Below, piece by piece: positions 16,916 to 17,403 of a stretch of 64,000 bases of DNA. Made by a program: the position numbers and the translations under genes. The notes beneath the pieces are model-generated. The model did not search any database. It was not told the DNA's origin and saw only the letters and a program-made list of their open reading frames with translations. The stretch's first letter is position 1, and every line of letters begins with the position of its first letter. Source of the DNA: Laetmonice hystrix (Eukaryota); contig OZ249437.1 in the NCBI GenBank assembly GCA_965235115.1, forward strand, positions 10,602,001-10,666,000, in the 5' to 3' direction.

Positions 16916-17034
16916 CTTCGACTAAAGCAGTATACAGTGTACAAGTGACTGCTTTGCGCCGTCCGGCAGGCAAATTTAAACCTATTTTCTCTAACCGTTC
17001 TCTCAGAGCTCGGCCACCGTTTTTCGATTTGGCC
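16916..17034 (-). CDS. TFAP2: AP-2 exon 5b (119 nt; divergent duplicate, putative mutually exclusive exon)
   Basis: Acceptor ctttctctaattgcag|G GCC AAA and donor GTC GAA G|gtaagt. Encodes (R)[39 protein letters not shown](G). Phase 2 in and phase 1 out fit exons 4 and 6. Confidence 0.88.
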
Positions 17035-17065
17035 CTGCAATTAGAGAAAGCCGGCAGATTGTATA

Positions 17066-17078
17066 CACGAGACATTTT
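17066..17078 (-). promoter_or_regulatory. Putative selector D, 32-44 nt upstream of the exon 5b acceptor
   Basis: RNA AAAAUGUCUCGUG is complementary to element C. Confidence 0.5.
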
Positions 17079-17231
17079 GTTGGCTAGTGCTGCGTTGGTT
17101 GCGACTGCTCCATGCTGTCCCGGGGGTGTTCTGAGGCAGGGCGCCTGCATCGTGGAGGAGGAGGAGGAACGCAGGAGGGGGGAGGGGCAGGGACATGTTG
17201 TTGGCATTCTGTTCAGGAGCAACAGAGGCAT

Positions 17232-17259
17232 TCCAGGTGCTGCACTCAGGGGGTAAGGT
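17232..17259 (-). promoter_or_regulatory. Putative splicing selector A (intron between 5a and 5b), complementary to 16352-16374
   Basis: RNA ACCUUACCCCCUGAGUGCAGCACCUGGA can form 22 bp with the RNA of 16374-16352 (3 bp, one mismatch, 9 bp, 4-nt bulge, 6 bp, 1-nt bulge, 4 bp). Confidence 0.6.
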
Positions 17260-17284
17260 AATTTTTTTAGGGTCTTTCACTCAC

Positions 17285-17403
17285 CTTCCACTAAAGAGGT
17301 TAACAATGTGACGGTGGCTGCTTTGCGACGGCCTGCCGGCAAACTTAAACCGATTTTGTCTAATTTATCTCTCAATGAACGACCGCCATTTTTGGATTTG
17401 GCC
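17285..17403 (-). CDS. TFAP2: AP-2 exon 5a (119 nt; canonical-type copy, putative mutually exclusive exon)
   Basis: Acceptor ctcttcttacctttcag|G GCC AAA and donor GTG GAA G|gtgagt. Encodes (R)[39 protein letters not shown](G), close to vertebrate [41 protein letters not shown]. Absent from the ORF track in this frame. Confidence 0.93.

Follow-up and report, generated by a model that had tools for sequence, protein, structure and literature searches.

Tandem duplicated exon 5 in the AP-2 gene of Laetmonice hystrix, a putative pair of mutually exclusive exons

The AP-2 locus of Laetmonice hystrix

The stretch of DNA analyzed in this work, hereafter the window, comprises 64,000 nt of Laetmonice hystrix (GCA_965235115.1, contig OZ249437.1, positions 10,602,001-10,666,000) and contains an AP-2 gene on its minus strand. 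The exons that do not belong to the duplicated pair were located by translation and motif search within the window. In the order in which the gene is read, its features are the following:

62019..62486, minus strand: AP-2 exon 2, transactivation region with the PY motif FQPPYFPPPY; open frame, acceptor ...ttgcag, donor gtagga
43775..43832, minus strand: AP-2 exon 3 (SMEDTGNYISGEHNSVIKR), 58 nt; found by motif search and direct reading
28307..28505, minus strand: AP-2 exon 4, start of the DNA-binding domain, ends +2 nt; PF03299 positions 1-45, 73.8 bits
17285..17403, minus strand: exon 5a, the upstream canonical copy, 119 nt; PF03299 positions 45-91
17035..17284, minus strand: intron between 5a and 5b, 250 nt, from gtgagt to ttgcag
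16916..17034, minus strand: exon 5b, the downstream, faster-evolving copy, 119 nt; PF03299 positions 45-85
7943..8083, minus strand: AP-2 exon 6, in a phase that accepts 5a or 5b
3782..4085, minus strand: AP-2 exon 7, part of the dimerization region and the C-terminus, stop codon TGA at 3782-3784; PF03299 positions 134-197

The gene (3782-62486) extends over more than 58 kb, its introns measure 9-18 kb, and exon 1 was not found within the window. The AP-2 orthologue of Owenia fusiformis spans about 19 kb. Exon 3 is bounded by the acceptor ttttacag and the donor gtgagc, and its phase connects exon 2 to exon 4. The exon phases are compatible throughout the gene, and the joins 4-5a-6 and 4-5b-6 both yield an uninterrupted AP-2 DNA-binding domain. 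The best named matches of exon 2 are found in the annelids Paralvinella palmiformis (63%) and Capitella teleta (59%), with molluscs and echinoderms behind them, and annelid AP-2 matches the solved structures of TFAP2A and TFAP2B (E = 1e-104).

When the whole 627-Mb genome was searched with exon 5, the only two copies were 5a and 5b. The search with the Pfam TF_AP-2 profile (PF03299) rendered five exon matches only, all of them in the gene of the window and all above the curated cut-off of 23.4 bits. Both searches lead to a single gene and, thus, this animal has one AP-2 gene.

The 5a/5b pair

Exons 5a and 5b are adjacent and homologous, and they have the same length, the same phase (1/1) and intact splice sites (...cctttcag and gtgagt flanking 5a, ...aattgcag and gtaagt flanking 5b). 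In both of them the first base ends a codon, 39 codons follow, and the final base begins the next codon. Their sequences are identical at 89 of the 119 nt, i.e., 30 bases differ (25%), and their peptides share 30 residues and differ at nine of the 39. Different codons encode 15 of the 30 identical residues, and there are neither indels nor stops. The original prediction, made from the letters of the window, had described two 119-nt exons of equal phase lying 250 nt apart, with their AG/GT sites intact, and had also counted the shared residues and those recoded synonymously without indels or stops; every one of these numbers was reproduced exactly.

Protein region encoded by exon 5

Exon 5 corresponds to residues 256-294 of TFAP2A, and it encodes the tip of Loop2 with K257, the helix α3, Loop3, and the linker to the helix-span-helix domain. 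The encoded residues include the loop in which the mutations of the branchio-oculo-facial and Char syndromes are clustered. In TFAP2A, the DNA-binding domain extends over residues 202-273 and the dimerizing helix-span-helix domain over residues 293-422 (PMC10450164). Residue K257 of Loop2 reads the GCC bases, A256, S258, and N260 make hydrogen bonds with the DNA backbone, and K259, R263, R266, and K282 are part of the basic surface, while Loop3 comes after helix α3, in a region where disease mutations are concentrated (PMC10450164).

Both copies retain the equivalents of K257, A256, S258, K259, N260, R263, R266, and K282. In TFAP2A numbering, the two peptides differ at positions 264, 267, 268, and 270 of helix α3, at position 275 of Loop3, and at positions 284, 286, 289, and 291 of the linker. 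Since all the known DNA-contact residues are identical in both copies, the two isoforms would be expected to keep the same GCC-type core recognition, and a change of core binding specificity between them is not indicated. We infer that they may differ instead in DNA affinity or kinetics, in the geometry of the DNA-binding domain with respect to the dimerization domain, in modification, or in partner choice.

Reading frame and proposed exclusion of one exon by the other

Because 119 equals 3n+2, the frame is broken when both copies or neither of them are included. In fact, the join 4-5a-5b-6 runs into a stop after 10 codons, and the join 4-6, in which both copies are skipped, gives an immediate stop (...VLRR-stop). 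As far as the DNA itself can be read, it demonstrates no exclusion barrier other than this frame incompatibility. Other barriers were considered as well. Steric hindrance was discarded here because the intron between the copies, of 250 nt (197 nt in the related locus L006, see below), is too long, and it is conceivable in four other assemblies in which this intron has 58-75 nt. An incompatibility between U2 and U12 splice sites was also discarded, given that both donors fit the U2 consensus (gtgagt, gtaagt) and that both acceptors carry a pyrimidine tract followed by cag.

Complementary elements were found upstream of 5a (17548-17560) and in the 5a-5b intron (17066-17078) of the window (13 nt, 92%), and likewise upstream of 5a (2750-2767) and in the 5a-5b intron (3025-3042) of L006 (18 nt, 83%), and the pairing of the upstream element with the intronic one would loop out 5a in both cases. 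When the introns were analyzed for pairing of the docking-site/selector type, the number of inverted repeats was ordinary and the duplex energies equaled those of shuffled controls (z from about 0 to -1).

The searches of sequencing runs with the exon-5 region and with the 3' exon rendered no run on record as RNA among their matches. The contig set X4, which amounts to 59 Mb and comes from the same sample, contains part of the 3' exon region and nothing over 5a or 5b.

The tandem pair in other assemblies

With the 5b peptide as the query, we ran a full HMMER scan and then read the DNA of the matching loci. The matches P0001, P0002, and P0003 are open reading frames of genomic contigs that carry two exon-5 copies in a row; P0005 is 92% identical to the 5b of the window; and the open reading frame P0129 contains a 5a followed by a frame-shifted 5b. 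The 5a-5b tandem was found in at least six further assemblies plus the brachiopod Lingula anatina, and the loci whose copies were delimited are the following:

L006, Logan ERR14368249: intron of 197 nt between the copies
L004/L005, GCA_022702875.1 / SRR13427716: intron of 64 nt
L003, ERZ21781341: intron of 61 nt
L010, ERZ23486763: intron of 75 nt
L007/L008, Tara Oceans marine metagenome contigs of 620-628 nt: intron of 58 nt
L011, Lingula anatina: copies at 37609-37727 and 38418-38536, intron of 690 nt

Every tandem copy in the loci L003-L008, L010, and L011 has 119 nt and AG/GT sites. The original prediction, which regarded both copies as preserved, implied that an orthologous 5b should exist in relatives, and this exon is indeed present and intact in them, with 119 nt, the same phase, and AG/GT sites. 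No other AP-2 exon was found in the 3-kb flanks of the tandem loci of these other assemblies. The contigs L007/L008 belong to a planktonic animal, and both of its exon-5 peptides are fairly divergent.

The two copies can be told apart by position 9 of the exon, which is Ser upstream and Ala, Val, Ile, or Met downstream in all seven pairs of which both peptides were read, that is, in every tandem assembly except the source of P0129. The position equivalent to L289 of TFAP2A is occupied by Tyr, Phe, or Val in four of the seven downstream copies, and by Leu or Ile in the upstream ones (Tyr in Lingula).

It should be mentioned that the 90%-identity cluster of P0040, a 50-aa open reading frame of an AP-2 exon, also includes P0258, a protein of 389 aa without the AP-2 motif, which was apparently grouped there through an error in the clustering of the protein collection.

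Parallels at the transcript level

The loci of Lingula and Owenia were reached through their longest annotated isoforms. The RefSeq annotation of L. anatina contains eight AP-2 isoforms, which are automatic predictions, and two of them, X1 (XP_013408010.1) and X2 (XP_013408011.1), both of 481 aa, are identical outside residues 296-331, a segment that lies within exon 5. The resemblance to L. hystrix lies in the two tandem 119-nt versions of the exon being annotated as alternatives, with Ser in the upstream copy and a hydrophobic residue in the downstream copy at position 9. In contrast, the intron between the copies has 690 nt in Lingula and 250 nt here, the copies share 25 of 39 residues instead of 30 of 39, and the downstream copy of Lingula is also changed near the tip that reads the DNA (AKNKDGG), where it alters residues adjoining the base-reading lysine. 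This downstream, more divergent exon is the one used by seven of the eight RefSeq isoforms, the upstream canonical exon being used by X2 only.

A second parallel is provided by P0374, an open frame of 455 aa in which exon 4, a 5b-like exon, and exon 6 are joined. An open frame of this length on a Logan contig of 1686 nt implies that the contig derives from a spliced mRNA. P0374 is 78% identical to exon 2 of the window, and its source is a related annelid. Its exon 5 has Ala at position 9 and ends in ...TALVE, an ending that among invertebrate sequences is otherwise found only in the 5b exons of the window and of L006. When annotated proteins were searched with the region 47-90 of P0005, the matches were mostly vertebrate AP-2 proteins.

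Selection on both copies

The comparison of the window with L006 revealed 17 synonymous and no non-synonymous codon differences in 5a, and 17 synonymous and three non-synonymous ones in 5b, whose protein is 92% identical (dN/dS 0.04). Furthermore, two other assemblies encode exactly the 5a peptide of the window, although 17-19 of the codons have changed synonymously. In the alignment of both loci, the exons are 83% and 81% identical, whereas the upstream, middle, and downstream introns reach 37-39% per column, and the 250-nt intron between the copies of the window finds no real alignment with the 197-nt intron of L006.

The original prediction had proposed purifying selection on both copies, together with a calculation of dN/dS per exon across orthologues as a way to check it. 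This calculation, carried out with the Nei-Gojobori method (NG86) on five assemblies, yielded values of 0.009-0.044 for 5a and of 0.040-0.087 for 5b, which bears out the proposal. The dS values range from about 0.5 to more than 2; most pairs reach about 1 or above, often at saturation. The protein encoded by 5b has changed 2-5 times faster than that encoded by 5a across the five assemblies. The low dN/dS, combined with introns that can no longer be aligned, indicates that both copies have been held as coding sequence over a long divergence.

Distribution and origin of the duplication

No second exon 5 was found between exons 4 and 6 of the annelid Owenia fusiformis and of the mollusc Lottia gigantea, around exon 5 of Capitella teleta (1.6 kb upstream, 1.46 kb downstream), or in the 6 kb downstream of exon 5 in the flatworm Echinostoma caproni. 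Not all annelids therefore have the pair: Owenia lacks a second exon 5, and so does Capitella in the visible 1.46 kb. In nemerteans, many molluscs, echinoderms, hemichordates, and amphioxus, the annotated isoforms contain one exon-5 type each.

In the tree of the 39-residue exon peptides, only the group formed by the 5b of the window and that of L006 is well supported (98/98). The AU test with the same peptides gave p = 0.044 for a joint 5b clade of the five assemblies and p = 0.37 for a joint 5a clade. The pairs of the annelid-like assemblies, of the planktonic animal, and of Lingula may descend either from one old duplication followed by losses or from repeated duplications.

Interpretation of the pair

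Taken as a reading of the DNA, 5a and 5b are probably functional alternative, mutually exclusive exons of AP-2 in this species. A tandem duplication of exon 5 would have given rise to 5a and 5b, each mature AP-2 mRNA would carry exactly one of them, and a single gene would thereby make two proteins that differ at nine of 39 residues. Products with both copies or with none would presumably be lost by nonsense-mediated decay or give a truncated protein, and only the mRNAs with a single copy would then be productive. The central claim of the original prediction, that one gene produces two variants of the DNA-binding domain by splicing, is in this way favored by the reading frame, the single gene, the conserved tandem, and the selection on both copies, and indirectly by the Lingula isoforms X1 and X2 and by P0374.

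An alternative is that one copy, most likely the faster-evolving 5b, is a relic or pseudo-exon and that all the functional mRNA uses the other one. This would agree with the larger amino-acid change of 5b (2-5 times that of 5a), with the lack of runs on record as RNA among those matching the exon-5 region, and with the existence of annelids that manage with one exon 5. However, 5b has kept its 119 nt, its frame, an AG acceptor with a pyrimidine tract, and a consensus gtaagt donor; its 17 synonymous and three non-synonymous differences with L006 correspond to a dN/dS of 0.04 within an intron that cannot be aligned; and a 5b-like exon is spliced into the mRNA of a related annelid (P0374). Since a neutral 5b would not survive such a divergence intact, we consider this explanation improbable. 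The amino acid sequence is also what speaks against the second copy being a regulatory "poison" exon, whose joint inclusion would lower the AP-2 output without producing a second isoform. The stop found 10 codons into the 5a-5b product and a 250-nt intron long enough for splicing speak for such a role, but it does not need a conserved protein, and yet both copies have dN/dS values well below 1 and retain all the DNA-contact residues; moreover, productive forms with a single copy appear in the Lingula annotation and in P0374. A purely regulatory role is, for these reasons, quite improbable.

It could also be argued that the tandem copy is an artifact of the assembly or of the haplotypes, as all the DNA runs that we found come from one sample of one study. 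Nevertheless, single Logan contigs from three separately assembled runs of that sample cross both copies with zero differences, the copies differ from each other at 30 of their 119 bases, and at least seven other assemblies of different sources, Lingula and the source of P0129 included, contain the same tandem. The 25% divergence, the spanning contigs, and the tandem in other species demonstrate together that the pair is not an assembly echo, as the original prediction had maintained, and leave the probability of an artifact close to nil. The preferred reading is still that of two mutually exclusive coding exons.

Comparison with known systems

Mutually exclusive exons generated by tandem duplication are well known as a kind, e.g., in tropomyosin, FGFR2 (IIIb/IIIc), Dscam1, and ion-channel genes. 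The AP-2 pair resembles those of the tropomyosin/FGFR2/Dscam1 type in having adjacent homologous exons of equal length and phase, with both copies under purifying selection, and in a frame that requires exactly one of the exons; it differs from them in that no dedicated exclusion mechanism is supported in the window. There are also precedents for a DNA-binding domain that is varied by exclusive exons, such as the forkhead exons of insect FoxP and the α exons of Mef2. As in FoxP and Mef2, the exclusive choice of an exon would provide one gene with two versions of a DNA-binding or adjacent domain, although AP-2 is a different protein family with a different fold.

In AP-2 itself, we have found no paper that describes such an arrangement, since the full-text literature searches for AP-2, TFAP2, or TfAP-2 together with mutually exclusive exons rendered no description. 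The assumption of the original prediction that the arrangement was undescribed is therefore upheld as regards publications, but it does not extend to databases, because the Lingula pair is already contained in the RefSeq annotation.

AP-2 factors are central regulators of the ectoderm and, in vertebrates, also of the neural crest. Vertebrate AP-2 has diversified through gene duplication and heterodimerization, and most invertebrates are, to our knowledge, treated as having one AP-2 protein. If 5a and 5b constitute a conserved alternative pair, as the sequences suggest, some spiralians would diversify by splicing the same 39 residues of AP-2. The exon-5 peptides of the vertebrate TFAP2A-E vary within these residues too, and they differ at positions 9, 12-15, and 30. 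The vertebrate variants are encoded, however, by separate genes, with separate regulation and a single exon 5 each, whereas here the splicing of one gene would vary exon 5 and leave the other residues constant. The parallel with the vertebrate paralogues is thus to be understood as an analogy.

TFAP2 proteins act as homo- and heterodimers on GCC(N3)GGC sites (PMC10450164). More tentatively, 5a and 5b might represent an ancient switch of part of the Annelida, possibly shared with the Brachiopoda, that endows a single-copy AP-2 with a dimer code (aa, bb, and ab); we regard this extension as possible, although on balance doubtful. If it were true, the isoforms would be set apart by their DNA affinity or kinetics, by phosphorylation, or by the partners they choose, and different cell types would deploy them, in parallel to the division of labor among the vertebrate TFAP2 paralogues.

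The pair would also offer a natural experiment, with two isoforms that differ at only nine positions, all outside the known DNA contacts, and that selection has kept for a very long time. Comparing the binding and the partners of the two isoforms could reveal how the function of AP-2 depends on helix α3, Loop3, and the linker. For annotators, the pair is a warning that annelid AP-2 gene models with a single isoform may be incomplete.

Other features of the locus

The 18-kb intron that separates exons 2 and 3 contains a run of 155 N at 59863-60017. Intron 4 holds a short tandem repeat, (ACGTC)n, at 17497-17536, about 95-130 nt upstream of 5a, that reads tgacgtcacgtcacgtcacgtcacgtca and contains overlapping TGACGTCA palindromes resembling cAMP-response elements. 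In addition, two contig versions, each at about half depth, were observed in all three DNA runs at 17736-17874 and at 18204-18344. They differ by 5-6 substitutions and one indel and probably represent both haplotypes of the animal that was sequenced; exons 5a and 5b are free of such haplotype-like variation in the contigs of the three runs.
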